Origin: Amphiscolops sp. MND2022 | Taxonomy: Eukaryota | Length of the DNA stretch: 64,000 nucleotides | Direction of reading: 5' to 3' | Assembly (NCBI GenBank): GCA_964187785.1 | Contig: OZ076411.1 | Span: 44,826,001 to 44,890,000 of the forward strand | In this document: one piece after another, positions 7,949 to 39,315 of the stretch | Numbering within the stretch: the first letter of the stretch is position 1 | Layout of the letters: each line of letters begins with the position of its first letter | Made by a program: the position numbers and the translations under genes | Notes under the pieces: generated by a model | What the model was told of the DNA's origin: nothing | Database searches by the model: none | Seen by the model: the letters and a program-made list of their open reading frames with translations, nothing else

Positions 7949-8223
7949 GAGCTTGTGACACCGTACAAAGTTCCCGTCGAGCGCCCAAGAAAACGGTTAA
8001 TCACGCAGCCGAAAGTCCGCCCGAATTACCTTCAATGGATCTCGTACGACAACACCGACATATTACAAGCACCCGGCATTGTAGTTTCATGTCGTTTGCG
8101 AACTTCGATTCCCGCGCAGCAATGACGCGCTATGCCATCCGAGAATACGGACAAGAAGCAATTTTCAGACGACAACCTACAACCTACAGTAGGAAAAGCT
8201 TCACACTTGGTCTCGATCTTTAA
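7489..8223 (+). CDS. 244-aa ORF of unknown function downstream of the truncated integrase; may join 7140-7499 across a homopolymer frameshift
   Basis: Open frame. The duplicate at 26692-27303 reads through the junction (KMFFANVNSKDT) because it has 6 T rather than 7. Confidence 0.4.
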   Translation: MNSKDTNVAMVRCVTAHQLWKQDVVTSPPGDVYHSTAGWWLLVNSLDESSLVSPGTLLISLQNIRTLVELDNTLCFRLAKIFRSKIHIQHWLQLLAIIFCRQAKIGLLDKQPYTFETPVTVLEAFAVVRDWSTTNMGNRPLRQLSSARSSSHCRACDTVQSSRRAPKKTVNHAAESPPELPSMDLVRQHRHITSTRHCSFMSFANFDSRAAMTRYAIREYGQEAIFRRQPTTYSRKSFTLGLDL

Positions 8224-8811
8224 AAGCGCCTCGGGAAAATGACTTTGTTTTCCTGTTCACTAGAGCTTCCAGCAAATATCAACTATTACATGATATTCTT
8301 CATCTGAGTCTACTTGATTTAGCTATTACGCTCCCAATGGTTATTGCCAAATCATTACACTTCCCATTTCATGACCCAAAAAGATCTGCTAACATGTTAC
8401 TAACCTGGTACTCAGTGCTTGAAGAACTGTTTCGGTATACAAACGTCAAAACAGTCCTGCACGATAGAGTCTTTGTATCGATAGCATGGATCTTAACAGG
8501 AGATAGCAAAGCGTAACTGGAGGAGCAAGTTATACTACAGCAACTCGTGAGGCCTGCGGTCTTATTTTTTTCCTAATAGTACTCAAATTGAAATGTGTCA
8601 GTCTTTTAATCAAATAATTCTGGTTTTAATCAAGTTTTGTTCAGATGTCCTTTTGTTTCAATCTACGAATGCAACCTGTTTTCAGTCATGTCATGTTTCA
8701 GTGCCCTTGCGCAGCTCTCTAATCGATATCCAACATCCTCATATCATCAAGCAAAGATGCTACTTGTTAACGCAGAACACTATCGTTTCTTGCCTGTACA
8801 TAGTGCATTAA

Positions 8812-8983
8812 TCTTTCACTGTGTTGAGAGTTTGACCATTCAACAATCTGAGCAATGTGGATTCGACTAACAAAGACAAGAAATCAAGATATTATCTTCT
8901 GATCACTTGCAACTAAATACTGTCAGCAGCAGAACAATAGTGAAATCGTACATGACAGGAGACGGATATGAATTCAATCTTAG
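8812..8983 (+). repeat. Segment B, 172 bp left flank of the large transposon, repeated at 27288-27459
   Basis: Direct sequence identity by eye. Confidence 0.95.
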
Positions 8984-9006
8984 CATTACGAGGCCAAAGT
9001 GGGAAA
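8984..9006 (+). repeat. Left terminal inverted repeat CATTACGAGGCCAAAGTGGGAAA
   Basis: Matches the reverse complement of 26220-26242 at 21 of 23 positions. Confidence 0.93.
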
Positions 9007-9017
9007 TGTTCAATTTT

Positions 9018-9330
9018 TCAAGAATCAAGAAAAGTGGTAGTTTAACGCAGCGAAGTGAATTGTTTCCCGATTCTTGAAATTTGAACTTCAAAGAAATTGT
9101 TTATGCCGCCTATAAAAGTCAAGAATTGAGAAAACAATAAAGCGCATGTATTTCCACTATTTTCAAGAATCGAGAAAAAGACATTCGAGAATCTAGACAC
9201 TAATTTTAATACATGGAGATAATGTGTTAACATTAGTTTGTCGATTCTCGAAATTTTGTCGATTCTTGAAAATTTTGTCGATTCTTGGAAATTGTCTGGA
9301 TTCTTAGAAAATTTTCCCGAATTCTTATTC
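9018..9330. repeat. Left subterminal repetitive region (TTCAAGAATCGAGAAA-type motif in both orientations)
   Basis: Copies such as ttcaagaatcaagaaa, cgattcttgaaa, tttcaagaatcgagaaa and a tandem run of tcgattcttgaaaatttt at 9241-9330. Confidence 0.8.
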
Positions 9331-10325
9331 AAATGTTACAATAGTGAATTTAATTCATTCAGTACGCGCGGTCCTTATGTATTTTTATTAAGTTTAATTG
9401 TAATTCATTTTTTTCAGTGTTTTTTTATTGCTCAAATTGAATCAAACAATATAAAAAAAATAGTGAATTTAATTGATCAGTTGATAATTTTTTTCATCAA
9501 ATTAACGGAAGAATCATTGTTAAAATTATAATAAAGGTTTACAATGATTGCTCAAGTTAAATTGTTCTGAACCAGTTAGATTCTAAGGTGCTAAAATATT
9601 TTTTAATTGAGACTTTTACTAGATTTTTTGAATGAATAATTCAATTTTTTTGCAGCAACGATTTTTTTCTGAACCAATAGCACCTCCGTTTTAGCTTTTT
9701 ACTTCGTTACTTGTCAAAAGTTTCTAAACCGTGAGTAACAAAAGCAAAATTGAATTGACATTGAGTCTTTAAAAGAATTACTAAATATTTCTAATCCATG
9801 AGCAACAAAGGAAAAACTTCAATTGAAATCGAGTCTTTCAATGAGTTATTAGAAACCAGTTGTCTGAAACCAACAGGAGCAACAAAAGCAAAAAGAAATT
9901 GAATTCGAGTCACTCTTTGAACTTTCAAGCCTCATCGATTTTGGCCACATGAAACAGGTTCCGGAAAACGAATTAGACCATCCTAATTGTTATTATCTCT
10001 TCGAGTCACTCTTTGAGTTTTCAAAAACTTTTAAACTAGGAATATAAATGAAATATTAGAACTATTTTAAATTTGAGTCAAAAATTTGAACACGAAAATA
10101 AATTTCATTGAAGTTTACCAAAGTACAGAATCATGTTCACGACTACATCAAATAATCGGATTGTGCCTCTTTCAAATTGTGTCTAATTACTTCTCGGTAG
10201 CTTGAAGCTGGATACACCCCTTCAATTGTCACCAAACCACATTTAATGAAGGACATGCTGAATATTTTCCGGATATAAAATCTCATTGACTTGATGTATT
10301 TATCGCTTTCTTCGTATGATCCTGG

Positions 10326-11662
10326 TCATCTGTCCCAAGATTTGCCGAGAACTGAGTCCCAAGATTCATTACATCCAACTTCAGTGCAGGCATTTTGAAT
10401 TGAAAACATGACATCTTTCTCTTTTTCGAATCCAAGGCTTCTTTTTGCAAAATCGTCAGCGATGCAAATAATCCCGGAGTAGCCAAACTTGGACCCTAGA
10501 GCCATACCCACTGCATGCTTCACAGCTGAATAAATGCCACACACTTTATCGATGGGGTGAATTAGTTCCTGTATCAAATTCTCGTGGGTACTTTTTAATA
10601 AATAGTTGCGTTCTTTGAGTTGTACCATAGTCGAAGGCATGGTCACAGTAACATCGTCACACTCTTCGGACACCATTGTCACAAAAACAATATGCTTGTC
10701 TTTTTTGTAAGTTGACTTCATTTCGATCACTGTTGCTGCCTCACCAGAGTGATCAAGGACCTTGGCACCAATTTGAAGTATCCCATTTATGCAAGGGAAG
10801 CATTTCATCGGTACTCGTTCGACCGACTTCTGAAAATAAAAAAATTGCTCATGAGACTCTTCACTGATATGACGCACATATGACACATCTCATGACGCAT
10901 AACTCATCACTTAAAAATGATTTCTGAGAAAAACTGACTTTTCCTGAATCAAATTCGAAAAATGAAAAAAATATATTTTTGAATGAAGTGCTTCTATGGT
11001 TAAATACTTACAGGGACCAATGTAGACATATCGACAGGCTCAGTTTGTTTCTTTGCTCCAAAGGTTACTTTTTTGGGCTTTGGAGCAGTTAATTTTTCTT
11101 CTTTATCGTCGTTTGAACAATAATTTTCGTCTTCGATATTATCAAGATTTGTCGACGAGGACGGCTGGTGAGCGACTCGGATGGCACATAGATCATTGTA
11201 TGGAAATTTCAAAGTGGGATAGTTTGTGTTAAGGGCTTTGATTTCTTCGTGGTCTTCATGCCAATTTTCGTAATCTTCCTCCAACAAAATTTCCATTACA
11301 CTTTTCACTGAGTCATTTTTGAATACCCAACCCGGCGTTTTTAGGCCGTCCTTCAAAAAACATACTTGATCGCAACGAGAAAGGAATTTTGGATTGTAAT
11401 CAAGTTGTTCTTTTTTTGTTCGACGGCGTTTTTCGGGTAAAACATCTCTTATCGCTGCAGATTTTCGAATATTCCACTTTTCAGGTTGCCCCCTTATGTT
11501 TTCTTCTACGTGAATTTCTGATGTGGTATTTTTGCCGAAATATTTCCACTGCACAATCACCGTCCAGTCATCTTTGATAGATACAATTTTTGCCTTCCAC
11601 CAAATAAAAAGTTCATCAACTGCATCGACAATGTCGTTAACTTGAAATTTTTTTGATAGCAT
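10326..11662 (-). CDS. Two-exon gene (11662-11012, 10829-10326; about 384 aa) with an N-terminal Tudor/Agenet-like chromatin-reader barrel
   Basis: FQVNDIVDAVDELFIWWKAKIVSIKDDWTVIVQW resembles Tudor-knot/PHF20-type barrels. GTAAGT donor at 11011 and TTTTCAG acceptor before 10829 join in phase 0. Confidence 0.65.
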
Positions 11663-11821
11663 CTTTTTCGGGATTTTTGGTATGAACGTAAGATGAAGTT
11701 AATTCGGGAATGAAATTTGAGATATGACACAAAAAATGCTGATCTAATATTTTGAAAATAAGCCTGTGAACTTCAGAGTGTGAAACTCATTTCTTTGCGT
11801 TTCGAAGACTCATTTTAGTGA

Positions 11822-11909
11822 CAATGTGACGCGTCACATTGGCCTCAAAAAGAGTCACTCTTTTTGGACACATTTGAACGAATCTTTGACGGTCAAAGAT
11901 TTGTTCAAA
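11822..11909. promoter_or_regulatory. Two palindromes in the divergent intergenic region between the Tudor gene and the transposase locus
   Basis: Perfect 20-bp CAATGTGACGCGTCACATTG (11822-11841) and an 18-bp-arm inverted repeat with one mismatch (11873-11909). Confidence 0.5.
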
Positions 11910-12038
11910 ATGATGGAAGTTTTTTTCAAACCAATATGACTCTTTTCCAACGGATGTAAATATCATGATAACATAATATGATAATATACTTGATAAAGAT
12001 CACACTTTTTTATAAACCATTACAACCTAATCTTTTCA

Positions 12039-13024
12039 TTGCTTTCAAACAATCAATTCATTGCTTATTATTCTCAAATGGATCTTTGGAAACAACATTC
12101 AATGATCATCGATGGCCGACATTTTATTGATTACGAACTTATCGATTATTTACGTGATCACACAGAGGGAAACAAATGCCGACAAGCAGAAGTCCTTGTA
12201 AAGCATGTCATCAGCGGAACCTCGTTGAACTTCCAGGATCTCATTGTGACATGGACCAAAAAAGGAATGAAACGTCACTCAGTCTTCATCGCAGTAAGTT
12301 ACTTCTGGTTGTGACACTTTTTCATCGTAAAATTAGCCTCATTTTGAGAAAAACGCATTTTTATATCAAAAAACTGCTTTTAAAGTAGTAATGACGAGGT
12401 ATAAATCATCACTCGTTTTTTTGCAGTTTTGTGATCTTCTTCTAGAGAAAAAATTATTTTAAAATCGATCTAAGACTTAAAACTATATATCATACAAATT
12501 TGTATCGATTTTTTCTAAACCGGGAGCAAACAAAAATTGCTCCAGAATCAGAAAAAAACCAACATATACATATCTGCATTTAAATTCAAACAAATGCTCA
12601 CAGTTTAGAATTGATTATTGTTTTTTCATTTCAGGCTCAAATAATGCAGCTGATTGTTCTGAGTGGCGGCAAAAGTCTACCCTGGTCACAAAAAAGAAAT
12701 GCTTTCATCAAGGCTTTTTTGGGGTTGGATTTGTACCCTGCAAACCCTTTCCAGGATGTTGTTGCTTCAGCGACGAGTTGTTGTAGTGCTTCCATGACAA
12801 CTCAGGAAACACAAACAGATGAGGTCGCAACGATTGAAACACCTTCCATTCAAATAGACGCAGTCTCCGTGACTGAACCCCCTAACTCCATTTGTATCGA
12901 CGAAGTCCCAGCGACTGAACCCTCTACCATTCGAATGGACGAAGTCCTCGTGACTGAACCCCTTAACCCTATATGTATTGACGACGTCCCCATGACTGAA
13001 TCTCAAACGATGATGAAGCCTTAA
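12039..13024 (+). CDS. Two-exon ORF upstream of the transposase (exon to 12293, intron 12294-12634, exon 12635-13024) with about 14-aa VTEP tandem repeats
   Basis: GCA|GTAAGT donor and TTTCAG|GCT acceptor join in phase 0; repeats VTEPPNSICIDEV, ATEPSTIRMDEV, VTEPLNPICIDDV. The stop overlaps the transposase ATG (TAATG). Confidence 0.55.
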
Positions 13025-14781
13025 TGGATGAGGAAAACGTGTCGTCTCGGAATCGCAAAACTAAGGCTCGAAAACTGGAACTGAAAAGAGTAGCAAGGTT
13101 GCAGAAATGTCCGTATATTTCTTGGAAATACGTTTTGAATCACGCCAAAACTAACAATGTTGACTTCGAGATACTAATAGAAGTGATCCTGAAAGTATCA
13201 AAAACGAAACAATCATCGTATCTTAAAACAATTGTTGAAAAACTTTTCCTAAATATGAAGTCCAAAGAGGCGATGATTTCAAGTCTTGCTGTTTCGGTTC
13301 GATCAGGAAATATTGATGTAATTTCAACGATTCGGGCTAATTTATCGATCAACGGACAGCTGCACAACATTATTCCATCCTCAAGAGCGATCCGAAGTTT
13401 CTCGAAGATCTTAACGAATGCGTTCATTTTGATGTGCAAACCAGAAGCCACGTTCTCAGGGTTTCGATGTGATCTCGTCAAGTGTGTCAAAATCGCCGCG
13501 TGGCTCCTTTTTGAAACTGAAGACCTTTCTGAATTGACTATCGATTTATGGGGAGATGGATGTGAGATTGGTGGTGTCGATCATACAAGAATGTGCTTCC
13601 GGATACTGAAGAATTATTTCTCGAAAGTTACCGTTCAATCAGCTACTGTGGCATTTTGTTTTAGCGCATTTCATGGTAAAGATAGTAGATTTACCCTTGA
13701 ACAAAATCTCGGACCTTCAGTTGTTGGGAACCAAGAAACAGGATGGCTGTACAAACAAACCAAAGAACTCTCATCTCAAGGTGCCATCGTGACTTGTTCT
13801 GGAGACAATCCTTATTTATATCGTTTGATTGAGGGTATTGATAGCGATGCCTCATCAAAATATCCATCTGATCTTGCACTTTATGTTGGTGAGGCAAAAT
13901 TTTTCCCAACTGATGTCGACCCTTCAACAGGATTCCGCTACAAAGTTAATGTGCCCTTCAGGAGAGAAATACCCCCTCAATCGCTCGTACATCTCGATGA
14001 CATACGATGTGTTGTACCGGATGTCACCCACATGATCACCCGTTGTGTCGAAAGTGACCTCAAGAAAGTTGCCCAAAAAATCGTTCGAAAAAAATATCCT
14101 TATCACAAGAAAACTATTGAAACCCTCGAAGAAAACTGCACTCGAAGAGGAATAAAGAAACCCAGATTCAAATTCGACGTGGAGATCAGAGGAACAAGTG
14201 ATTTGAAAAAACCAACAGTTGGATCCGTCTCTTTGTCTGGAACGTCTGCTATTGTTGCCATTGCTGAAAAAGATGAATTTGAAGGTGTAGAAGGCTTACC
14301 AAACATTTTCGACAATTTATGGAACAATGAGATTATCTTTGACCCCAAGAACGACAACATGGACAAAGATGATGCCCGTGCAGCCCGCAATGCGTTTTAC
14401 GCCCTCAAGAAACTGCACTCCGACAAAATTCCAAATTCAGACAGTTATAAAACCAAAGATTGTGCCCAATTGCTACAAACAAGCTTGAATAAATGCGCAA
14501 AACTTTTGAGAGGTTCAAAAAATGGCCTTGACATTGAACAATTCGAAATTTGGTCCGAGACATACTATCAATGCTCAATTCTTTTCTTTTCCGGAAAACA
14601 CGGTTTGACACCATATAAGTTGAAGATGATAATGATACCCCAGATTTTGAAGGCGGGTTTCGCAATGAGTCCTTGGTACCATATGTGTGAAGCAATGGAG
14701 AAATCAAATCACCACGCACATAAAGACTTCCAAACGAAAACGATGAGAGGTGGAGGGAAAATTCATGTGAATTACCAGTGA
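13024..14781 (+). CDS. 585-aa DDE transposase, Chapaev/Transib/RAG1-core-like
   Basis: Ordered motifs LWGDG (D178), CSGDNPYL (D261), PDVTHMITRCVE (D333/H336), SLSGTSA, LTPYKL and CEAMEKSN (E559) parallel RAG1 D600/D708/E962 and Chapaev ISGDG/GGDWKFL/DTLH/TPYMH/LEKLN as I recall them. Confidence 0.8.
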   Translation: MDEENVSSRNRKTKARKLELKRVARLQKCPYISWKYVLNHAKTNNVDFEILIEVILKVSKTKQSSYLKTIVEKLFLNMKSKEAMISSLAVSVRSGNIDVISTIRANLSINGQLHNIIPSSRAIRSFSKILTNAFILMCKPEATFSGFRCDLVKCVKIAAWLLFETEDLSELTIDLWGDGCEIGGVDHTRMCFRILKNYFSKVTVQSATVAFCFSAFHGKDSRFTLEQNLGPSVVGNQETGWLYKQTKELSSQGAIVTCSGDNPYLYRLIEGIDSDASSKYPSDLALYVGEAKFFPTDVDPSTGFRYKVNVPFRREIPPQSLVHLDDIRCVVPDVTHMITRCVESDLKKVAQKIVRKKYPYHKKTIETLEENCTRRGIKKPRFKFDVEIRGTSDLKKPTVGSVSLSGTSAIVAIAEKDEFEGVEGLPNIFDNLWNNEIIFDPKNDNMDKDDARAARNAFYALKKLHSDKIPNSDSYKTKDCAQLLQTSLNKCAKLLRGSKNGLDIEQFEIWSETYYQCSILFFSGKHGLTPYKLKMIMIPQILKAGFAMSPWYHMCEAMEKSNHHAHKDFQTKTMRGGGKIHVNYQ

Positions 14782-15335
14782 ATTTGCTAATCGATAAAAT
14801 GACCACAATTTTCGCAATCGAAAAAAGCGAGACCTATACCGAAATTTGTCAAAAAATTGTGCCTCTTCCAGTGATTGATGTTGGTGCTCAGCGAAAGAAA
14901 CAGGAATTGCTCTTTGGTTTCCGATTCCACGTGGTTGGCTTTTTCCCTGGAGTCAAAGACAATCAAAAGGGAGTTGAAGACATGATAATTGAATTGGGTG
15001 GAGAAGTATTGACAAAAGAAAAAGCACTGGGCTTGACCAAACGTCATAGTAAAACTCCGAATTGCTTCATTGTACTCTATAACGATTTCGAATTGAAGAG
15101 GGCCACCACTGGAAACGGAGACCACAACTCTGCATCTGGTTCGGAAAGTGACAACCCCGTGAAATTTACCAAATCATCATCCAGGCGAACAATCAAGCCA
15201 CGTATCATGGTGAAGGGCCCAGCTCAAACCTGTCTACTATTTGCGGCAACGGATTTTCAATTCCTGAACGTTGCCTACATCTTTGATACAAACAACTCTG
15301 ATCGTGTTCTTGACCCTTCAAAGTATCTTATGTGA
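14778..15335 (+). CDS. BRCT-domain ORF directly after the transposase (possibly its spliced C-terminus)
   Basis: GFRFHVVGFF...VEDMIIELGGEVL and C-terminal FQFLNVAYIFDT..S.RVLDPSKYL follow the BRCT pattern. Confidence 0.6.
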   Translation: MNLLIDKMTTIFAIEKSETYTEICQKIVPLPVIDVGAQRKKQELLFGFRFHVVGFFPGVKDNQKGVEDMIIELGGEVLTKEKALGLTKRHSKTPNCFIVLYNDFELKRATTGNGDHNSASGSESDNPVKFTKSSSRRTIKPRIMVKGPAQTCLLFAATDFQFLNVAYIFDTNNSDRVLDPSKYLM

Positions 15336-15844
15336 AGTGCCACTGAAATTGAACGAATCTGTGTGAATGATCAACGACCACTTTTTGCGAAACAGAGAAA
15401 TCCTAACAATACCGAAAATGTTACCACATCATTGGTTTATGCATTGAAGATCTCGAGAAAGCGGGCCCGCGAAGAAGAACAAGAATTTGACCACGTAAAT
15501 GATAATATGAAGAAAGACAAACACACATGAACGTTTTTTTTATGACAAGGCTTTTGACATGGATCATCTAATCCTATCATTTATATGACTTTTCGAAAAT
15601 TTATTCTTGGTCATTGAATGATCATCTATGATGTTTTCAAAATCTTTGTCCTGATCACTGATTGATCGTCTATGATGTTTTCGTAGAAAAAACCATATCT
15701 CTTGAAGAATTATCAAAAAATCAAATGCTTGAAAAATGAATAAACCAAATCAATAATTCAAATATCAAATCAATAATTATTCAAAAAAGTTTTTTCTAAA
15801 CTTGCTAAGAGAGGAGAATGCTAAGAGAATATTGAGAATAGTAT

Positions 15845-17003
15845 TTATTCTGAAAACATCTTTCTTGCTTCTTGATCCCCATAATCATATCTTAGCTCGT
15901 CGAAGGGAGGAATGTCATGTTTCGCCACCATTAACAACACAGATTTGCTGGAGGATAGATTCAAAATAACAGGTTTGACGTTGGTGTGCTTAGGAGATTT
16001 GTGGCTTATCAATCGGGCCATGCATCTATTCTTCATATGATCGACTACTGGACATAGTTCGTTTGAAGCATCGATTAGATGTTTCAGTGAAATCTGAAAA
16101 AGATATTCACTGCATTCTGGGTGATCAGCCATGTAATCGTTGGCAGTGATGCCCTTCACGACTTTTCCATGGTAATCATCAAGGATTTGATCCTTGTCTA
16201 TGAAATCGGTGGTAATGACTCCCCGGCCGAATCCTTTGATGTTGACGTCACATATGAATGGCCACGTCTGATCTTTGCAGGTTTTCGTCAGGATCTTTTT
16301 AAATTGTTCATGCTGATCTTCTCTTGAGGGGAGCATCAAAGCCTGTGATCGTAACGAGACAGTCTGTGTCTGGAGTGCCTCGGGTTTCAACCGACATTGA
16401 ACGATTTTCCAGGTCTGAAAAGAGTTGGTGTTAATAATCAAATTTATACTTGCGATTTTGTGAAATTTCTTTTTAAAAAATATTTTTTTTATTTCTTCAA
16501 CAATTTCTTCTTCAATAAAATTCAATGCTCTTGAATCTCCCAATTTAATGCTCTTAAGATAACGTTTCTTCTGAAGTTTTTTAAAATGACATATTTTGAT
16601 TGGAAAATAGACAGCAGAAAAACTGAAATACTTTTTTGAGGTCTTCATTTTCGTTCCACCCTCTTGTTTTGTACAGACTTTTGAGTTTCTCATGGGTCGG
16701 GTTCTGGGCATAACGCTTTCCAAAATCACAATACTCGAGGAAAGCCTTAGCCCTTGCGACTTGTCTCGCATATTTTTGGGCACTTTGCCGGGAAACGACA
16801 GCTGACCCCAGTTCTCGCTCAGTAATTTCATTTTGGGCCGCCCACTCCTTGTCAACTTTCAAGGCCCATATTTCAGACATTGTCCGTTTCTTTTTCAAAA
16901 ATGTTGCATCGGGCGATGCTGATATTGGCATATAGGATTTGACGTATTTTCCCACTCTGACGTATATTCCCACTCGATGGTGTCGCGGCTTCTTTTTTTC
17001 CAT
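15845..17003 (-). CDS. KMT5A/PR-Set7-like SET-domain protein, last two exons (17003-16632, 16570-15845)
   Basis: KGFGRGVITT..DYHG, YLFQ..IDAS, MARLISH, LLMVAKHDI..FDELRYDYGD. A 61-nt GTATTT...TTCAG intron (16631-16571) joins the two ORFs in phase 0. Confidence 0.85.
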
Positions 17004-17009
17004 CTGCAG

Positions 17010-17210
17010 AAAAATCATTTGAAAATATTTCTAAACCATGAGCACATCTTTTCAATATGCAAAAAAAAATAATTTTAAAATACGTCTAAACCACAAGCAC
17101 GTCTTTTCAATGTGCAAAAACGAATCATTTGAAAATATTTCTAAACCACGAGCACATTTCATCAATATGCGAAAAGAATCATTTGAAAATATTTCTAAAC
17201 CACGAGCACA
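17010..17210 (+). repeat. About 55-bp tandem repeats, each carrying the 15-bp element motif
   Basis: Motif copies at 17029, 17084, 17139 and 17193 within repeated atcatttgaaaatatttctaaaccacgagcaca. Confidence 0.85.
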
Positions 17211-17299
17211 TTTTTTCAACAATGGTTCAAATTATTTTTAAAAAATACCTTATCCAACACTTCCTCCGCAATGACTCGAGAATTGAAAGAGGTCTTTCC

Positions 17300-18147
17300 C
17301 ATTGACGAAAAGAAAAACTTGGTTGTCATAACTTATTCAATTTCTTCGTCTTCGCTTCTGAGGAAGGCCCTCTTCACCACTTCGGGTTGCGCCCGCATGA
17401 ATTGCGGTCTCACGCATTTGTGGTACACTTTCATGGCTTCAACGAATAGCGGCTCCACAGTATGTTTGCTTCGAATTGTTGACCTTGAAATCAAATAAAC
17501 AATATCAGTATTTGAGTGGTTAACAAAACAAGTTTACTTGATCTAGATTTTTTCCAAAAAAATGAAAAAGACATCAAAAAATGGAAAAAAAAAACAAAAA
17601 ATGAAAGTTTTGGATGAAAAAATACTTTACCGAAAAAAGGTTCCACCTCAATTTCACCAGCACCATTTTTGCTCTGCTTGGCGTTGATGATGAGTTGCAT
17701 CATCGAATGCACAGTAACAGATTGCACCGTCTTTGTCATCATGGGAACCGGCTCAGTGTACATGAAAAGGTATGTTATAATACCGTGAAATAAATTGACC
17801 CTTTGATGGTAACTAAGGCCATCATTTACTGCATATTCGTCCAAAATTTCGCGGACATAACTCTCTAATTCGGGTCGTACCTTTGCCGACCAGAGTCCTT
17901 TTGCAGCATTTCGTTTTGATTCAGTTTCGTCTTGGGGTTCCGGAAGTAGGGGTCGTTTTAACGGATTTACTTTTTCGGTGGAAGGGATCTCGTCAAAACT
18001 ACCGGAATTGGTTGATGGTAAATTTTCAAAAACAATGTTTTCTTGTGTGTAATTGAACGTGCGGTTTCCATAATTTAATGGCCGAATGGGACTCTCACTT
18101 GGACTGAAACTGAAATTACTCACAAAAAGAGTCTTGTTAGAACCCAT
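17300..18147 (-). CDS. Probable upstream exons of the SET gene, forming part of a degenerate tyrosine-recombinase-like fold
   Basis: ORF 17491-18147 plus an open frame at about 17484-17330 (STIRSKHTVEPLFVEAMKVYHKCVRPQF..RAFLRSEDEEIE). Junctions need a 1-nt correction. Confidence 0.45.
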
Positions 18148-19403
18148 TTGGTAGTTGGGAGTAGACTGATATATTGCATTTGAATTGTGCGAATGATTAG
18201 TGTATTATGGAAGCGGAGGAGGTAACAAAGGTGTGAGGGAAGTTGAGTCTGTGGTAACGAGCCAAGAAAGTTAGTGCTCGCGTTAAGATCAATTTGTCTA
18301 AGAGGCTGACTCGACATTGTGAAATTTTGACAGAAATTATAGAGAGCAGAAATTGAAAAATGATTCTAAGTTGAATGCAGCCGCTTAAATATATATCTTT
18401 AATAACCCACATCATGTGATAATCCAATGACACCATGCCAAATCGCGGAATATTAATTACCACCCGTGGTGTCATTCGATAATCCGCGATGTCGCATGGT
18501 GTCAATGGATTATCAATATATGGATGCTGATAAAATGCCCATTAATCTTCCGCAAAAATTGACATAGTTACTTCATCGCACAATTTTAAATGAAATTTGA
18601 AAAGACTACTATACCTTAATTAGTTGAAACTCTAAGAATAATCGGCGCAATAATAATTAAACATGCGTGAAGAATTCAGAAATGGATAATTAACCATTAA
18701 CCTCATGTTTAAAGATATAAATTTGGACATTTAATCGATTTCTTCTTGCTCCCAGAACGACACAAGAATTCACGTAAGCATAATTATTCATGATTTTAAG
18801 AATCCCCACACGCATAATTAACCATGGCAAATTTTCTTTTAAGGCAGTAGCACACGAAGTTTATTCAAATTGCAATTGAATTTTTGTGGATTCTTCAAAG
18901 TAATGATTAAACATTCGCATGCAAAAATTCTTCCAAACTTAATGCTCCTGGTTTAGAAAATTGATGTTTTCATTAGGTTTTTCATTATTAAAATCATGAT
19001 ACAATTTTCAGTACATGTTAACTACTCTTGCGCTATTGGTTTGGAAACTTTATCAGCTCAGGTTTTCTTATAGAACTTTGTATTTTAATAGCAAAATAAA
19101 AAACGTTATCGAACTTGTATTTTCATCGACTCATATGCTCACGGTTTAAAAACTTTTAATTCATTTTAGAATTTTTTTTTGTAACTACATTCTTGTACTC
19201 GCAGGAAGCTAGACTGAAGTGCTAGATATAACCTCAAAAGATTTTTTTTCAGCAAAAGAATAATAGCCCTCTTGAATTTTCGTGTTTTTTGGAAGAGTAA
19301 ATGAAAAAGATTAAAGGCGTCCATAATCAGAAAATCATAAGTATAAATCATACAAAGTATAAGTACAACATAACAAGTTCAGATCATGATCATCTTATTC
19401 AAA

Positions 19404-22400
19404 CTAAGCCCCTGAGGGGGATGATGGCAATTCAATTGCCGAATTCTTCTGTCTCTTGTTTCTCTTTTTCATTAGGGCTCTCTGTTCGTCATAGGGAAAA
19501 CGAAAAGCCAAGTTGGAATGTGCTGAGGGGGGAATGCAGCGTGCAACTTGACACTTCGAGAGTGAAAGCTTGTTTTCTTCATCGGGGGCACAATCGAGTA
19601 GTAGCAGACAAACTTTCTCTGCGTAAGGGACCAGTCTAAACAACATTTGTTTTTCGAATGTTCAAACAATTTTGTTGTTCAACATCAATAAGGGTTGAAA
19701 TTTTCTCATTTAAAAAAAAAGATATCTGGACAAATGTAAAATATGCATTTTGCTCACGGTTGAGAAACTTCTTCTATGATTAGTAAGTTGTTAGCAAAGC
19801 TAATAAAAATTCTCACTAGTGAGCAAAAGCAAGAAAAAATCAATAAATTAATATTTTGTGGGTGAAGATAACGTGATCGTCTGGTTTCAATTCGTTTTCC
19901 AGCAATGTGATATCGTCGATTCGCTCTTCGAATTTCCTGGGTGGATCATGCGCGTACTCCAATTCGGGACTCCGCGAACACAGCTCGGGTATGATGGCTT
20001 GGAAATCATCGCCCACCCGTGTTTCAGCCTTTTTGTCCAATTGCTTGTTCTTGGACGGGCCACGGATCTTGAAAAAAGTTGAATCCTAATTTTTTCTATG
20101 TCAGAATGAACATCAAAAAACCACTTGACAAAAACTTGATCAATCACTCTTAAGGAATTTATTGACTGTGGATGAATAGGCGCTGGTGGTGGTATGGATG
20201 AGGTGCTGGAGGAGGTATCGGTGGAAACTTTCGGTTGAACCCGGGAGAGAGCAACAGACCAAAAACCCTCAGGCACAAGACGTCTTTTCAGCAGGGTCAT
20301 GATCATCTCTTCGAGGAGATCAAAATGAGGACACGCCTTGAAATAAAAATTTGATATATTAATTTCATCAACGCTTGTGAGAGGAAAAAAAAACAGATTT
20401 TTGCTATCTCAAAAAACTGATTGCTATTGATAATTGATAAAAACTTTTAAAAAATTGATAGAAAGCAAAAAATCATTGAAAAATTATTGACTCTTCAACT
20501 GGATCATTTTTCACATTTTTCAAACTGGTTTACTTCTTTGATGATTGGCATTTCTTGATGGAATTTTGTCTTGAGGCGCTTCAAAAAATTCCACACCCAG
20601 ACCGAAGACACATCGCCTCGACCATCATTCTTCTGCTCCATGACATGCGAGTATATGAGAGCAGCCAACACTCCCGACAAGCAGGGATAGACACTGTCCG
20701 CATCATCGTCGTTTCGCACATGGGAGTCAATCACCAAACCCATGTGACCAAAGGAGAGAAAATTCGATCCGAGTGCGATGGAATCCCCAACTGTGAGGAC
20801 GCAATGAATCCAATTTGAGGGCATTATGATGGTGTCACCTGCTTTTGCATGGATTCTATGGCATCCGCCTTCAATCGAAGCCATATCGCCAAACGACAAG
20901 TTTTAAAAAATTAATGTTCTTTTTGTCAAAATATTCAGATTCATTTCATCAGAGTCTCAGTTGAGGAAAAACTCAAAATTGATCACAGTTCAGATACTTT
21001 TTTGCCGGAAATGACCTTGAATTTTTTGACAAAAAAATTGACAAAACGAGTGAGTCAGCGAAAAAACTCACGGTTTAGAAATAAAAGATTTATTCAAGTC
21101 AGTGTATATACTTGAATGGAATGAAATATAGCTTCAGATAAACAATGTGTTGAAAAATACTTTTCGACATATAACTTTCTGGGCATTAACTGGAATAGAA
21201 CATGAATGGCTCACGGTTTAGAAAAAATTGTAAAAATAGGTAGCCTGTTAGTAGATTCGAACTTGGTAACTACGACTTTGAACTCTCAAGTTTAACCAAC
21301 TATGCCACCGAGCCCTTGTATACATTAAATTTTCATTGCCATATACTTACTGACTGGGGTTGTCATGCAAGCAGTATTTCTCGAACATGTTGAGATTCTT
21401 TTTTGTTGGCTCAGCAAGCCAAAAAATTTTCTCCCCGCGCAACACCACATAGAAGACTGATGTTCCGGAGAAATCAATGTGCCATGGCGTGACACAACGG
21501 TCGTTTGAAAGCAAGAGGAAATTCCAAGTGCTTGCCGCGAAATATCCTTCGCTATGGGGGGTTAAAGATTCGGCAAACGGATCCATTGCCATCTTCCGTA
21601 CTGCTGTCGGTGGTTTGAAGACCTTGATAATATACAATCAACTCTTTTATCGCTAACAGAAAAAAAATCTTACTACTAGTAAGTTTTTTCCTTCTGACAA
21701 AACAAACACTTCTGCTATAGCTACTAGTAGTACTAGTAGCTATAGCAGAAGTGTTTGTTTTGTCAGAAGGAAAAAGGGTTAAAATTTAAAAAAAAATCAT
21801 TTTTACCCCAGGACGGAGGATTACGTCAATAACATTGACCGGAAAAGCATTCAATGGCGCAGAGTCTGGATCCCGTTGTTCTGCGGGGTATTCGGCTCTT
21901 GACAACTTTCGTGAGAGGACAGGCTTGGGGGACGATGGTGAACTTTGCAAAAAAAATTGTTATTGTTTTGCCTCCTCATTGAAAGACTTCTGGTATATAT
22001 TTTTTCTTCAGAGAATTGTTAGTTAGTTTCTTAGTAGGTTAGTTTCTCATTGCTCACGGTTTAGAAAGTTCCAAATACTCACTTGACAAAAACGAGCTGA
22101 TTTGCAGTCGAGTTTTTTGTCTGGATCAGACATGAATCCCAGCAAATGTTCGGCATTATCCGGAAAACTGGTGATGTGAGCTGGTATTTGCGGTACACGC
22201 AGCCCTTGTGCGTTCTTGGCCGCATCTTTCCACAGGATCGGAATCCCGTGAAGCATGAAGAAGGTCACTTGCTCAATTTCTCGATCAACGTGGCCACTCC
22301 ATGTCACGGTTTTCGCCTCAGGGTTGATCCGTGTTCCTTCGATATGATCGAAGTACCGTTGAGAACCCTCAGTTGCTGACTTTCTGGGGTAGCGAAGGAA

Positions 22401-23671
22401 TTTTGCTGTCTCCTTCCACGCGTGCAGATAGTTTCGATCCATGTGTCTTTCATAACTATATTTATGCAAAAACACTTGATCGCATCCAACACATGTTTTG
22501 AGATCTCCGATGACAGTCTCTGCAAAATTAAAACTTGATTGTTTACAGTTGAAATTCTTAATGTATAAAGTTCTTGAATTATAAGTTTGAACAGGAAAAT
22601 ATAATGACCAGTACATTCAAAAGACTTTGACTTTACACGACACAACTTTCATGCGCCTCAAAACTCTTTTTGCTCAATTGTTGGCGTACGTCATAGAGAA
22701 ACAACTGAATCACTGGAAAAAAAATTGAAATCTGAAACGGGAGGTTCTAAATACATCTGAAGACTCAAAAAAATATTATGTACACATGCAGGGGCCTTCA
22801 AAGGAAGATTAATTTGGCTTCGAATCGTTTGCTTTTTTGCAGAAATATTTTTTGACCAGTTATTGACGTACATCGTAGAGAAACAACTGAAACACGAGAG
22901 AAAATGTTTTCTTTAAAAGTGAAATGGGAGGGTCTGAATACATCTGGAGGTTCAAAAAATTGACATGTACACATGCAGGAGGCTTAAGAGAAAGTTATTT
23001 TGTCGTCGATTACTGTGGTTTTTTGCATAAAAACGTTTTGACCAGTTATTGGCGTACGTCATAAAGAAACAACTGAAACGTTGAAAAATTTTTCAATAAT
23101 TTCGAAATGGGAGGTTCTAAATACATCTGGAGGTTCAAAAAATTGACATGTTCACGTGCAGGAGGCTTCAAGAGAAAGTTATTTTGTCTTCGATTTCTTT
23201 GCTTTTTTGCATAAAATTTTTTTGACCAGTTATTGGCGTACGTCATAAAGAAACAACTGGAACGGTGGAAAATTTTTTTCAATAATTTCGAAATGGGAGG
23301 TTCTAAATACATCTGGAGACTCAAAAAATTGACATGTACACATGCAGCGGGCTTCAACGGAACAATATTTTGGCTTCAATTTTTGTGTTTTTACATTAAA
23401 AAAGTTTTTTGACCTTTTATTGGCGTACGTCACTAAAGAAACAACTGAAACACTGGGAAAACTTTTGATTGAAATCGAAGTGTTTGAACTCACTGTTTTT
23501 GAACAAAGCTGGAGCTTTTCCCTCGTTGAGTCTCTGGACTCTTTTCGCGCATGCTTTTGACTCTTTATGCCGTTCTAAGGCCAATTTCGACGAGACAGGT
23601 TGTCCACAAAGGTCGCAAACTTTCGGAAGATAATTCTTCGGAGAATCCTGTTTTCCTTGGCATTTCTTCAA
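19404..23671 (-). CDS. Multi-exon gene: C2H2-type zinc finger(s), KDM2/KDM7-like JmjC demethylase, ELM2-like domain
   Basis: Exon peptides in order: CDLCGQPVSSKLALERH, CVGCDQVFLHKYSYERH, HGIPILWKDAAKNAQGLRVP, PVNVIDV, VFKPPTAVRK..VTPWHIDFSGTSVFYVVLRGEKIFWL, GDTIIMPSNWIHCVLTVGDSIALGSNFL, ETRVGDDFQAIIPEL. That all exons form one transcript is inferred. Confidence 0.7.
19850..20060 (-). CDS. ELM2-like exon
   Basis: ETRVGDDFQAIIPEL resembles the ELM2 start IRVG.EYQA.IP.L; only the N-terminal motif is recognised. Confidence 0.6.
20531..20902 (-). CDS. JmjC catalytic exon 2 (distal His)
   Basis: CHRIHAKAGDTIIMPSNWIHCVLTVGDSIALGSNFL matches KDM2 CQRIELKQG.TF.IPSGWIHAVYTP.D.LVFGGNFL. Confidence 0.88.
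21241..21315 (-). ncRNA. tRNA-derived/Pol III promoter-like sequence inside a JmjC intron
   Basis: Minus strand GGGCTCGG-TGGCATAGTTGG (A box)...AGTTCGAATC (B box); acceptor and T stems do not pair well, so not a functional tRNA. Confidence 0.45.
21351..21622 (-). CDS. JmjC catalytic exon 1 (HxD)
   Basis: TPWHIDFSGTSVFYVVLRGEKIFWL matches KDM2/PHF8 TDFHIDFGGTSVWYHV.RG.KIFWL; acceptor before 21622, GTAAGT donor at 21350. Confidence 0.9.
21685..21775. repeat. Perfect 91-bp palindrome (45-bp arms, 1-nt spacer at 21730)
   Basis: tttttccttctgacaaaacaaacacttctgctatagctactagta-g-exact reverse complement, inside intron 21806-21623. Confidence 0.95.
22680..23450. repeat. About 185-bp tandem repeat, four full units plus a partial
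   Basis: Anchor ttggcgtacgtcatarAgaaacaactgaa recurs at about 22681, 22863, 23049, 23233 and 23420. Confidence 0.9.
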
Positions 23672-24965
23672 GTGTCTTTAGAAGTTGTATTTACGAGTCG
23701 ACTCGTAGTCGCAAAGTTCACATCTCATGATATCAAGTCAAGTTTCTGTGACAAAGTTTCACTATGATAATCCACTGGTTTTGGCTCACGGTTTAGAAAC
23801 AAATTGAAAATTTCATCATGTCAAACATGGGCGAAATTTTATACAAAACGTGGTGAAAATTTCATTCAAATCATCAGAAATTCTCGTCAAATTCATTTTC
23901 AATCTGATTTTTGTTTTGAAGTGCTCATGGTTTAGAAATAATGTTTCTTCAAAAAATGTATTCGAAGTTAGGTGAAGTTCAAATTCATTAGTTGGGTGTA
24001 AAACTACATTCAAATCATCTCATTTTATTATTGCAAAGGCTCGTCGAATTGATTTTAAAGTGCATTTTCAAAAATTAGAAATAACGAATTACCTTCAAAG
24101 ACAAAAAGGGTGAAGAGAGAAGAGGTTACTTCAAAGATCAAGCGGTAAACAAGAGGTTTGCACGAAACGGAGCAACTGTAAAATCGAAAAATAGGGGTCT
24201 TCCTAGGAGTTCGAAATTTTATTTTAATTATCAGGAGTCCGAAAAAGAACACAACAGTGAAAATTGAATTTGCACAAAAAATATTCAAATACTAAATTAG
24301 GCGAATGGCTCATTTATACCAAGGTATCTGCAGGTATGTAGCTATGTAGTTGATTTCGACAGGCCCTGAATTAATGAAAATCCTTGATTTCGTCAGGTCT
24401 GGGACTTCGCTGTTTCAAGTTATTTTCGAGTTTTTGTTACTTGTATGTATGTTCTTTTAATTCAATTTTGCCTAGAACTCAATTTTTTGACGCTCACGGT
24501 AGTTAGTTTCAAATAAATACATTGTTAAAGTTGCATAAAAACTGTGAAATACAAATGAAACGGCTTAATGATCTTTCGAACTTATTGGTATTAAAATGTA
24601 TTTCCGGACTCGTGAATAGCAATCGAATAATAACAGTGATAAATTGAGTTTTAACGTGCTAGGCGAATGACTTGCTGCAAAGTGATTTGAAGGAAGGAAT
24701 TCAAATGAATCGGCGAGTTTGCTCGCGGAGTAGAAATTTTATACAAGCATTTGTTTGCATTGCTCGCGGAGTAGAAATTTTATACATGCATTTGTTTGCA
24801 TTGTGAAGCAATATTTTCGTATAATGCAAAGTCTTATTTGCATTGTGAAGCGAAACGAAATTTCCTTACAAGATTGATGCCTGGATATTTTATAAAATTT
24901 CGCACTTTGTGCCCAAATGTGCCATAGTATGATGATGTTTAAAATCAATTCGAAAGATAGTTTTT

Positions 24966-25407
24966 GCTCAGGGTTTAGAAACAATGATACGAATCTAATT
25001 CCATAATTCAAAAGAAAACTCAAAACAAAAACTCAGCTTTTGCTCACAATTTAGAAATAATTCCAAGAATCAAAAAGAAAACTCAAAAGAAAAACTCATG
25101 AAATTTCTAAAAGAACTTAGCTTTTGCTCACGGTTTAGAAAAAATGAAACGAAAGTAATTCCATATTTCAAAATGAAAACTCAGAGGAAAAACTCATGAA
25201 AACTCATTAGAAAAACTCAGTTTCTGCTCACGATTTAGAAATATTGAAACGAATCGATTTTCATTATTACTGACTCAAATTACAAACTCATAATTTGGCT
25301 CATGGTTTAGAAATAACCTTGATGACTCAACTCATAACTCATAACTTGGCTCTTGGTTTAGAAAGAAAACTGATGACTCAACTCATAACTTGGCTCATGG
25401 ATTAGAA
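24966..25407 (-). repeat. Cluster of seven 15-bp element motifs near the right end
   Basis: GCTCAYGGTTTAGAA variants at 24966, 25042, 25126, 25226, 25298, 25349 and 25393. Confidence 0.9.
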
Positions 25408-25512
25408 ATAATCTTGATCATCATGATGATATTTATTTAAAATCGAGAATGAAATTGCAATGAGAATAAAAATCGAGAACGAAATTTATTTAAAATTGAG
25501 AATCAAATTTTG

Positions 25513-25740
25513 TTGCACTGGTTTGTTGGGGGAATGGGTTCTGATTTGTTGATAAGCAGGTTTGTTCATCGATGCCATTCGTGGACAGTAATGTCTGCCA
25601 GCAGAACCTGCCATGTGTATTTCAAGAAGGACGGAACGAACAGATGCCTTGAGGTTGAAAAGGCCTTGCGTTTTGATCCCAAGCCAGTCCGCCAAGTCCC
25701 GGGTATTGGCCAAAGCAGTAGAAAGTCCAACCACGCGAAC
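25513..25740 (-). pseudogene. ASCC3: Captured fragment of a host ASCC3 (Ski2-like helicase) exon
   Basis: [75 protein letters not shown] closely matches the ASCC3 second helicase cassette as I recall it; preceded by an intact TTCAG acceptor. Confidence 0.85.
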
Positions 25741-25899
25741 CTGAACAAATTTTTGATTTAAAATTGAGAATTCAAATAAAATTGGTTTAAAAAAGGATGA
25801 TATTTATATAAAAGCGAGAATGAATTTTTTTAAAAACAGAGAATCAAATCTCAATAACATTGATTTAAAAAAAGAATGGAATTTAGTATGATTAGATTA

Positions 25900-26160
25900 G
25901 ACCAAGAATTGATGAAAAGTTTTGAAGAATTGATGTACAATTTTCAAGAATTCATATAAATTTTAAGAATCAACGTAAAATTGAAGAATCGAGAAAGTTT
26001 CAAGAATCGCTAGAAGCTGTTTTTCTCGATTCTTGAAACATTTCTCGATTCTTGAAACATTTCTCGATTCTTGCATGCTATGCATTATATTTGAATCAAG
26101 AATCGAGAAAAATCCCCACTTGCTTTCGCTTAGTTTTTCTCGATTCTTGAAGTTTGTATG
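25900..26160. repeat. Right subterminal repetitive region (TTCAAGAATCGAGAAA-type motif in both orientations)
   Basis: gaagaatcgagaaa, tandem ttctcgattcttgaaaca, caagaatcgagaaa; same motif family as 9018-9330. Confidence 0.8.
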
Positions 26161-26219
26161 TATTACCATTAGTTCAAGAATTCAAAAATTACTACAACGA
26201 AATCGTTGTAGTTCACGTT

Positions 26220-26242
26220 TTTCCGACTTTGACCTCGTAATG
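26220..26242 (-). repeat. Right terminal inverted repeat (reverse complement CATTACGAGGTCAAAGTCGGAAA)
   Basis: 21/23 match to the left TIR; followed by the AG TSD. Confidence 0.93.
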
Positions 26243-27767
26243 AGTGGTGTTCAAACCACCGGCCTCTGTACGATTGACGCAGCCTGTGATAACTGTGCAA
26301 GTTTCCAGTAGAGCAAATGCATTCCCGTGTTTGATGTCTGACTGATGTCATGTGTTTCAGTCCTACGGTCGTCGTCTTCTGAACCGCTTGTTCTGCCTGA
26401 ACTTCATACACTTGAATGGACGATGGATGAACTCCCTAAAGACAAGACGAACACGGTAACTGAAAGGGATCCCCAATCACGCGTCGGAGCACAATGGACT
26501 GAATGGACGCTTATTTGTAATTTGTTTCGATGTTTTATGTGTCTTGTTTCCAGTAGACCATCCACAACACGACATTTATGCTATTCAGGCCAAAAACCAA
26601 GACGTTCCACTTGTACATAGTATAGTGATAACTGTAAAAAAAAACTTACTTCAGCATTGACCCATGTGCGGTTCCTCCATTAAAAACTACTTTGAAGGAA
26701 ATGCTTGAAACATCACCTACGGATTGTCCCAACTATCGCTTCAAGGTGTGGACATGGCATGAAAAGAGATTAGAGTTCACGTTAGCTGCTATCAATCCCC
26801 GACTCCCACCGAAGATGTTTTTTGCGAACGTGAATTCTAAAGACACAAACGTAGCAATGGTACGCTGTGTCACCGCGCATCAGCTATGGAAACAAGATGT
26901 CGTGACTTCCCCTCCTGGAGATGTGTATCACTCAACCGCTGGTTGGTGGCTATTAGTCAATTCCCTGGATGAATCATCACTAGTGTCGCCGGGAACTCTG
27001 TTAATTAGTCTTCAGAATATACGTACACTCGTCGAGCTCGACAACACTCTTTGTTTCCGTTTAGCTAAAATCTTTCGCAGCAAAATCCATATTCAACATT
27101 GGTTACAGCTACTAGCTATAATTTTCTGTCGCCAAGCCAAAATAGGCCTATTAGACAAACAACCATATACGTTTGAAACGCCTGTAACAGTACTGGAAGC
27201 ATTCGCCGTTGTTCGCGATTGGTCAACCACAAACATGGGAAACCGCCCGCTGCGACAACTAAGTTCGGCAAGATCGTCGAGCCATTGTCTTTCACTGTGT
27301 TGAGAGTTTGACCATTCAACAATCTGAGCAATGTGGATTCGACTAACAAAGACAAGAAATCAAGATATTATCTTCTGATCACTTGCAACTAAATACTGTC
27401 AGCAGCAGAACAATAGTGAAATCGTACATGACAGGAGACGGATATGAATTCAATCTTAGTGGTGTTCAAACCACCGGCCTCTGTACGATTGACGCAGCCT
27501 GTGATAACTGTGCAAGTTTCCAGTAGAGCAAATGCATTCCCGTGTTTGATGTCTGACTGATGTCATGTGTTTCAGTCCTACGGTCGTCGTCTTCTGAACC
27601 GCTTGTTCTGCCTGAACTTCATACACTTGAATGGACGATGGATGAACTCCCTAAAGACAAGACGAACACGGTAACTGAAAGGGATCCCCAATCACGCGTC
27701 GGAGCACAATGGACTGAATGGACGCTTATTTGTAATTTGTTTCGATGTTTTATGTGTCTTGTTTCCA
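26243..27767 (+). repeat. Composite duplication C-A'-B'-C' (C 26243-26552; A' 26551-27289; B' 27288-27459; C' 27458-27767)
   Basis: Constant offsets of 19341 (A), 18476 (B) and 1215 (C); junction overlaps CA, TC and AG. Confidence 0.95.
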
Positions 27768-39290: not shown

Positions 39291-39315
39291 TCTTTGTAAT
39301 TCTCATGGTTACTCT

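Follow-up and report, generated by a model that had tools for sequence, protein, structure and literature searches.

The DNA analysed here, referred to as the window, is a stretch of 64,000 nucleotides from Amphiscolops sp. MND2022 (GCA_964187785.1, contig OZ076411.1, positions 44,826,001 to 44,890,000). It contains a DNA transposon of 17,259 bp in forward orientation, which we delimited by self-BLAST of the window and by reading of the junctions, and which is flanked by a 2-bp target site duplication (AG). The host target is duplicated in the window, and its second, uninserted copy, with the empty site at 27458/27459, fixes the limits of the element at 8984–26242. From left to right, the element carries a minus-strand gene with a weak Agenet/Tudor-like match (G1, 10143–11698), a plus-strand gene for a RAG1-like transposase (12611–15506), a minus-strand gene with a SET domain (G4-SET, 15845–18147) and a minus-strand gene with two C2H2-like zinc fingers and JmjC exons (ZnF-JmjC, 19887–23722). 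Exons and coding blocks were mapped by tblastx against other subfamilies of the same transposon family. Between and within these genes lies an array of a short oriented motif, and we examine here its distribution, its evolution and its possible role.

A bipartite motif confined to the transposon

The exact pattern TTCTAAACCRYGAGC matches the window 9 times. Allowing up to two mismatches raises the count to 25, whereas shuffled sequence gives an expectation of 0.41 and a maximum of 2. A first-pass annotation of the window had listed 23 copies of a 15-bp motif, and the mismatch scan reproduced each of their coordinates and strands; two extra variant copies of the form TTCTACTCCGCGAGC occupy the minus strand at 24721 and 24762, and position 9665 has a weak one. 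A weight matrix built on the copies gave a 17-bp core, TTTCTAAACCRTGAGCA, with the two bases preceding GAGC nearly free. The motif is thus the core of a bipartite 17-mer composed of TTTCTAAA, CC, NN and GAGCA. Scores of the copies in the element range from 17 to 29.5 bits, whereas the top match in the other 47 kb of the window reaches 15.1 bits, which bears out the earlier statement that no full copy lies there. No site of 16 bits or more was present in 67 kb of host DNA (from the window and from the flanks of two further family copies, A and B, described below), and no site of the window motif was present in 149 kb of loci of other subfamilies. In the DNA scanned, a small part of the genome, the sites are thus enriched in the element, with sites and strands kept in copies A and B.

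Each element holds ~25–36 copies of the motif, confined to its introns and intergenic DNA. As the first-pass annotation had held, all copies fall outside the conserved coding blocks, as judged by translated comparison with other subfamilies; after tandem arrays were collapsed, 15 clusters remained, all 15 of them non-coding (P ~2e-4). About half of the copies sit in recognisable tandem units of 41, 51, 55, 67 and ~100 bp, and at least 11 are isolated copies with unrelated flanks. Because the copies share no similarity in the 30 bases that flank them on each side, the motif is a discrete short site, and we ruled out that it is part of a longer repeat or of a miniature inverted-repeat transposable element. 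A splice-donor or U1 site (GTGAG) was likewise ruled out: the two central bases are free in both the window subfamily and its sister (for example GGGAGC and AGGAGC), and a dispensable central GT counts against such a role. A search of Rfam gave zero matches in the window.

Distribution of the sites along the element

Copies start at least 680 bp from either end of the element, and most lie 3–8 kb inside. The leftmost two, at 9722 and 9789 (9722–9803), are on the plus strand in 67-bp units 3′ of G1, and degenerate units of the same repeat occur at 9665 and ~9856. An inverted pair, 12513 on the plus and 12596 on the minus strand (12513–12610), stands just 5′ of the transposase ATG (~12644) and downstream of a conserved block at 12018–12302; the divergent promoter region between G1 and the transposase gene (11699–12017) is motif-free. 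Four plus-strand copies at 17029, 17084, 17139 and 17193 form a 55-bp tandem array (17029–17207) in an intron of the G4-SET gene, antisense to it. A motif-free interval follows (17208–18943), which contains the 5′ exons of the G4-SET gene, and every copy to its right is on the minus strand. Three of these (18944, 19137 and 19752; 18944–19766) lie in the stretch that separates the G4-SET start from the 3′ part of the JmjC gene, and three (21066, 21209 and 22052; 21066–22066) in introns of the ZnF-JmjC gene, in sense orientation. Two more (23784 and 23923; 23784–23937) are located 113 and 252 bp upstream of the end at 23671 of an open reading frame (ORF, 23417–23671) in which the ZnF-JmjC gene has its first conserved coding block; the tblastx block itself reaches 23722. 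The remainder form a dense cluster in the right arm (24721–25407), in which the variants at 24721 and 24762 occupy 41-bp units and seven copies (24966, 25042, 25126, 25226, 25298, 25349 and 25393) occupy units of ~100 and 51 bp, the seven-copy group lying 835–1520 bp from the right end. Copies are few in the left arm and many in the right, which has 18.

A TAATCC variant of the site (TTCTAATCCATGAGC) is found in just two copies, 9789 and 25393, which lie 806 and 836 bp from their respective ends. The near-equal distances are also seen in copies A and B, and the flanks of the two copies are unrelated.

Orientation of the sites mirrors the two arms

In order along the element, the 15 clusters read + + − +, followed by eleven −. 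Such a two-block orientation with one exception (12596) has P ~0.006–0.012 under random orientation, and the flip of orientation inside the element, as originally described, is upheld. Its placement at the midpoint held only in part. In the window the midpoint (17613) falls within the flip interval, and in copy A the interval also includes the physical midpoint; in copy B, however, the left arm is lengthened by a duplication, and the flip interval (relative positions 11583–13333) excludes the midpoint (10499). The arm, rather than the midpoint, is therefore the organising principle. The window element, copies A and B and the sister subfamily all change strand within the stretch that runs from the SET-gene intron to the sequence upstream of that gene.

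Gene strand does not account for the orientation, and we ruled it out: the array in the SET-gene intron is antisense, whereas the copies in the JmjC-gene introns are sense. In the sister subfamily, a copy between the two G1 ORFs is antisense. We also considered GC skew, which is mirrored along the element with a cumulative minimum near 17.9 kb. Once motifs and exons were masked, the skew was −0.003 in the left arm and +0.08 in the right, and with a flat left arm it is too weak to serve as a separate polarity signal. A 99-bp imperfect palindrome (48-nt arms, 81% complementary) is present in the flip interval, upstream of the G4-SET gene (18417–18515); it has no counterpart in the sister flip interval, and a conserved palindrome at the flip was accordingly rejected. 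Most likely, the polarity carries the terminal inverted symmetry of the element inward, so that each site would work relative to the nearer end.

Turnover and constraint among family copies

Two further full-length copies, A and B, were obtained from an ENA assembly that we judged to be of the same species from the shared family and near-identity. Copy A (18,914 bp) is mostly ~89–92% identical to the window element, with a minimum of 84% and a maximum of 96% in the JmjC-side segment, and has a 2-bp target duplication (GC). Copy B (20,998 bp) is ~91–98% identical by segment and contains a 3.6-kb internal duplication. The start and end bases of both are identical to those of the window copy. Both keep motif copies at homologous places and on the same strands, and no motif was found in ~21 kb of DNA flanking them. 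Unit numbers vary: the array in the SET-gene intron has four units in the window, two in copy A and three in copy B, and the region upstream of G4 has two, 11 and two copies, respectively. Short contigs from four public runs, placed on 20500–26400, include forms in which 81, 92, 73 and 104 bases of the arrays are skipped. In the same contigs, family-consensus pieces have ~20–30 times the depth of rare pieces, which suggests, as a rough estimate from depth, a family of tens of copies.

The motif diverges more slowly than its surroundings. With sites chosen in the window and compared with copy A, identity was 95.5% in the motif versus 88.5% in the flanks, a biased comparison, because sites chosen in the window tend to look conserved. 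Sites were therefore chosen in copy A, and the window was compared with copy B: motif columns differed at 3.1% of positions (16/515) and the 40-base flanks at 6.2% (133/2143; Fisher p = 0.005). This is a modest effect, in the direction expected of a site that may be functional.

A changed site in the sister subfamily and arrays in distant ones

A sister subfamily, with ~65% transposase identity, has no window-type motif in its loci. Its own site reads GTAACGACTCC-NN-GAGC, with the weight matrix GTAACGACTCCNNGAGC; GAGC, CC and the two free bases stay in the window register, and the upstream block is changed. The two variant copies of the window (…ACTCCGCGAGC) look like intermediates between the sites of the two subfamilies. 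The tip of the sister terminal repeat reads CATTACGACGCCAAACAGGGAAC. Sister sites are absent from called ORFs, and their positions are only partly homologous to those of the window: one lies between the two G1 ORFs, a gap that is probably an intron, and several are found beyond the 3′ ends of the transposase and SET genes, places that are motif-free in the window. All left-part sites of sister elements are on the plus strand (loci L005 and L010, and copy C). At locus L009, sites are on the plus strand at 8686, 8737 and 12276 and on the minus strand at 15756, 17142 and 20322–20452, the switch occurring across the SET-G4 gene.

Arrays in more distant subfamilies flip across or after the transposase at loci L007 and L011, and show no flip in the part of L006 that is covered; the limits of these elements are not fixed, and the polarity at L007 and L011 is suggestive. 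At L007 (37% identity), arrays of a 183-bp unit at 12802–13380 and 18823–19465 are mutually inverted and up to 95% complementary. They bound a 5.5-kb segment in which the ZnF-JmjC gene runs in the direction opposite to that in the window, which suggests inversion through recombination between the arrays. At L012, a 38-bp satellite of ~78 units in a single orientation extends from 12147 to ~15000, directly after the transposase gene. Genes of Gypsy-type long terminal repeat retrotransposons (RVT_1, RNase H and integrase) are found beside or inside family copies (L001, 2236–6432; L011, 14076–21818).

Ends, transposase and chromatin-related genes

The terminal inverted repeats occupy 8984–9011 (plus strand), beginning CATTACGAGGCCAAAGTGGGAAA, with the same tip in copies A and B, and 26215–26242 (minus strand), ending CCTCGTAATG. 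The inverted ends have the form CATTACGAGG.../...CCTCGTAATG, the tip reads CATTACG, and the ends of family copies have the form CATTACGA.... Next to the terminal repeats, at 9012–9315 (32–306 bp from the left end) and 25904–26152, are arrays of another motif, TCGATTCTTGAAA, with copies in both orientations. This 13–19-bp motif, in 19-bp units, is found 32–320 bp inside each end and nowhere in the interior, and it is a classical subterminal repeat. Since the ends hold this different motif within 32–320 bp, we ruled out that the 17-bp site is itself a true subterminal repeat. Words related to TCGATTCTTGAAA, namely GTGGATTCTTCA and GTGGATTCCAC, form internal arrays in other subfamilies (L005 and L007).

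The transposase was assigned from a structure model and its matches in the PDB. In the window the gene is broken by a frameshift near 13024 and by a ~70-bp deletion near 14770 (~14766–14776), which takes out a conserved stretch (…DPLF…). Copy A, in contrast, has an intact ORF of 992 residues, so the window copy cannot supply its own transposase. A homologue search with the 585-residue transposase ORF gave 25 relatives, all unnamed, one of which is the intact protein of copy A. The model of this 992-residue protein, built with 13 sequences, has a core with predicted local distance difference test (pLDDT) values of 70–90, and modelling is poor for the 260 residues at the N-terminus and the 250 at the C-terminus. 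Its best matches among solved structures are the RAG1 core (E 4e-7), followed by HzTransib, BbRAGL and the P-element transposase. The predicted protein is therefore RAG1-like at the level of the fold only, and because the P element also matches, RAG1/Transib cannot be separated with certainty from other RNase-H-type transposases. A sequence search of the PDB with the transposase gave nothing informative, and a Pfam scan of the element ORFs returned no transposase families. The N-terminus (12824–13000, residues ~60–125 of P0001) contains tandem peptide repeats with units of ~14 and 27 residues (TEPxxPICIDEVP). Variable regions of VANC proteins, encoded by Arabidopsis VANDAL transposons, contain tandem peptide repeats as well (PMC5735166), a likeness that may be coincidence.

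The G4-SET gene comprises tblastx blocks at 17686–18147, 17246–17494, 16629–17018 and 15845–16420. Its SET domain was confirmed by Pfam; the JmjC matches of the ZnF-JmjC gene are below Pfam's own cut-offs. An intron of the JmjC gene contains a perfect 91-bp palindrome (21685–21775; 45-nt arms, 1-nt spacer), of which copies A and B appear to have a single arm, and public-run contigs show strand-switch joints there. Also within the JmjC gene is a 186-bp tandem repeat of 4.3 units (22667–23466), over which contig depth rises 3–6 fold and which has translated-level similarity to the locus L012 of a distant subfamily.

Around the element, the target region is present twice (7210–8983 and 26243–27767), once filled and once empty 1.2 kb downstream, at 99.5–100% identity. 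The filled copy has 863 bp extra (7949–8811) with no obvious inverted ends. Either a local duplication or the tandem assembly of two alleles could account for the doubled region. Elsewhere in the window, a 5.4-kb unit is tandemly duplicated (34858–45711, ~93% identical) with an AT skew of −0.25 to −0.33; it is unrelated to the element.

Comparison with known systems

The target motif of VANC21 in Arabidopsis VANDAL21 elements, YAGTATTAY, is element-specific and non-coding, occurs densely in the same orientation, forms tandem repeats that are gained and lost, and is replaced by a different motif in related families; the VANC21 protein was shown to bind the motif and to bring about a loss of silencing marks (Hosaka et al. 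2017, PMC5735166). The sites described here resemble this motif in several respects. They are short and enriched in one family: the 17.3-kb element has 25 sites, and the 67 kb of host DNA and 149 kb of other-subfamily loci have none of 16 bits or more. They are located in introns and in upstream or intergenic DNA, in tandem arrays whose units vary between copies. Related families differ in motif, the sister having GTAACGACTCC-NN-GAGC and the window subfamily the TTCTAAACC version, with neither in subfamilies at 37–44% identity. In addition, the element encodes candidate factors able to alter its own chromatin. There are differences as well. The host is an animal rather than a plant, and the predicted RAG1-like fold and 2-bp target duplication differ from the Mutator type with its 9-bp duplication. 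The site is longer (17 bp) and bipartite, and its arm-mirrored orientation is undescribed in the plant work (PMC5735166). Histone modifiers are encoded here, whereas VANC causes loss of DNA methylation.

A second comparison is with the maize CACTA element En/Spm, whose TnpA protein binds many family-specific 12-bp subterminal repeats and acts in end pairing and in relief of epigenetic silencing. TnpA sites lie within ~180–300 bp of the Spm ends, in both orientations. The termini here (CATTAC...) are one base off CACTAC, and the target duplication is short as well, being 2 bp in the two insertions (AG in the window, GC in copy A) and 3 bp in the CACTA type. The end-clustered layout of TnpA sites fits the TCGATTCTTGAAA repeats, not the interior, arm-polarised 15-mer.

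Recombination signals share fewer features with these sites. The best structure matches of the transposase model are the RAG1 core, HzTransib and BbRAGL, and RAG1 uses a second DNA-binding module, the nonamer-binding domain, to read an A-rich site with CC as its last bases, oriented with respect to the end. In the motif described here, the 5′ half (CTAAACC) may loosely resemble this nonamer, a weak likeness. The tip here reads CATTACG, not a CAC heptamer, the target duplication is 2 bp rather than 5 bp, and there are many interior sites, in contrast to one nonamer-like site per end at 12/23-type spacing. Skewed orientation converging on an internal zone is also known from KOPS, bacterial chromosome-wide 8-mers read by FtsK towards dif, and from sites of CTCF, an 11-finger host protein whose consensus is unlike the motif here. 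However, neither a translocase nor a dif-like site is evident in the element, and its convergence zone is a homologous gene region that lies off the midpoint in the lengthened copy B.

Based on these comparisons, the closest systems by behaviour are VANC/VANDAL and TnpA/Spm. By membership the element probably belongs to neither, as judged from its predicted fold, from its target duplication and from its ORFs, none of which is of VANC or TnpA type. The defining features of recombination signals, KOPS and CTCF sites appear to be absent. The first-pass annotation had proposed oriented protein-binding sites, either targets of VANC-like anti-silencing or polarity cues in the style of KOPS or convergent CTCF sites for the synapsis of ends 17 kb apart. 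Oriented binding sites as such gain support from the element-specific, non-coding, slowly diverging and arm-polarised copies, although no binder was found. A part in synapsis would be putative, and the ends have subterminal repeats of their own. No VANC, TnpA, FtsK or CTCF homologue was seen among the element proteins, with no VANC-type family among the element ORFs and no FtsK-like or multi-finger protein in the listed ORFs by Pfam, and with no TnpA homologue detected among the proteins.

A possible role in self-recognition and its alternatives

The sites share with VANC21 targets family specificity, non-coding location, same-orientation clusters, tandem growth, turnover between copies and a changed sister site. 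This point-for-point match, together with the chromatin enzymes of the element, leads us to favour a reading in which the sites are family-specific addresses for a putative element-encoded DNA-binding protein that would steer the chromatin enzymes of the element to its own DNA. We give this reading a probability of roughly 0.45. Protein binding, the element as encoder and chromatin control as the outcome are each inferred. An element-encoded sequence-specific protein would bind the 17-bp sites, the candidates being the ZnF-JmjC and G4-SET proteins and the first, poorly modelled 260 residues of the transposase. Binding would mark element DNA as self, and the SET, JmjC and Tudor-like proteins would then act on copies of the element and not on host genes, following the same principle as VANC on VANDAL21 and TnpA on Spm. 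New sites would arise by tandem duplication of short units, and the specific half of the site would change along with the subfamily.

Several observations weigh against this reading. No DNA-binding protein was found among the element ORFs, for which relaxed Pfam searches gave weak single C2H2 matches only. A homologue search with G4 gave no relatives outside this genome, and an Atlas search with the longer G4 relative P0026 gave no informative neighbour. The twofold lower divergence of the motif is modest, and alignment within arrays may inflate it; moreover, the three near-identical copies share ancestry, so conserved positions alone are weak evidence. Subfamilies at 37–44% identity have neither the window nor the sister version of the motif and have arrays of their own, which are too poorly resolved to generalise from.

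Alternatively, the sites could serve transposition itself, with the transposase or a helper binding them according to the nearer end and folding the 17-kb element so that its ends meet. Comparable roles are played by TnpA at the Spm ends and by the internal enhancer of phage Mu. Inward-pointing sites on both arms, irrespective of gene strand, would suit such a role, as would the RAG1-like fold predicted for the transposase and the position of the densest cluster 0.8–1.5 kb from the right end. The sister subfamily points the same way: its lineage-specific left-arm sites are all on the plus strand and the right-arm sites of L009 all on the minus strand, and the specific half of its motif matches positions 3–12 of its own terminal repeat in the same orientation (8/10, p ~0.014 uncorrected), a suggestive likeness. 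However, the window motif is unlike its own terminal repeat, the ends have separate subterminal repeats, no 15-mer starts within 680 bp of the ends and most lie 3–8 kb inside, and the left arm is poor and the right arm rich in copies. We regard a role in transposition as unlikely on balance. A host factor that binds the sites as enhancers or insulators, and so drives or times the element genes, seems to us a still weaker candidate. Its appeal lies in the two copies situated 113–252 bp upstream of position 23671, where the ORF with the first JmjC coding block ends, in the inverted pair just upstream of the transposase ATG, and in the clustering of sites in the same orientation, which is frequent in enhancers. 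Yet the 67 kb of host DNA are free of copies, as is the divergent G1/transposase promoter region (11699–12017), and most copies are intronic or far from gene starts. Furthermore, the sister subfamily has altered half of the site in all copies, a change that a fixed host factor would resist.

It is also conceivable, but quite improbable, that the motif has no function and marks the cores of units spread by replication slippage or unequal exchange, with an accidental polarity that local duplication merely copies. About half of the copies do sit in tandem units (41, 51, 55, 67 and ~100 bp), unit numbers differ among copies of the element, and only ~15 clusters are independent. Neutral spread accounts poorly, however, for the at least 11 isolated copies with unrelated flanks, for a motif whose divergence is slower than that of the remaining unit sequence and that avoids coding DNA, and for new site positions in the sister subfamily that take the strand appropriate to their arm. 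Finally, gap repair could have shaped the polarity whatever the role of the sites. Internal deletions of cut-and-paste transposons arise at short direct repeats during gap repair. After excision, refilling would proceed inward from the two sides of the gap; if both arms had repeats of one absolute orientation, the new strands would anneal early and the middle would be lost, so that elements with opposite arms would survive better. This logic draws on the mirror layout of the window element, copies A and B and the sister subfamily. Direct repeats within one arm should also cause deletions by template switching, and the right arm has 18, and the mirror GC skew nearly disappears from the left arm after masking. 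We consider gap repair a very improbable source of the polarity.

Implications

The element would represent a VANC-like cis-architecture in an animal transposon with a predicted RAG1-like transposase, with an arm-mirrored polarity of which the plant work gives no description. Sequence-specific self-recognition by transposons, as a means to evade or control silencing, has been shown experimentally for very few elements, namely VANDAL/VANC in Arabidopsis and TnpA of Spm. To our knowledge there is no animal example, and a targeted literature search found no paper on such a system in an animal. In its fullest form, the self-addressing proposed above would mean that an animal DNA transposon uses its own protein to read a fast-evolving 17-bp tag and to bring in SET, JmjC and reader proteins, and that the mirrored arrangement of the tags has a function in its own right, such as lining up the arms to bring together ends 17 kb apart. 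This combined version is, in our estimate, rather unlikely; if true, it would correspond in animals to VANC or TnpA and have an architectural role besides. The element, a giant animal transposon that carries a histone methyltransferase gene and a demethylase-like gene and has the DNA-level signature of these systems, offers a concrete place to test self-targeted chromatin enzymes, and the changed site of the sister subfamily provides a ready-made specificity swap. The arm-mirrored polarity may be relevant to end pairing in very long cut-and-paste elements or to their survival of gap repair.

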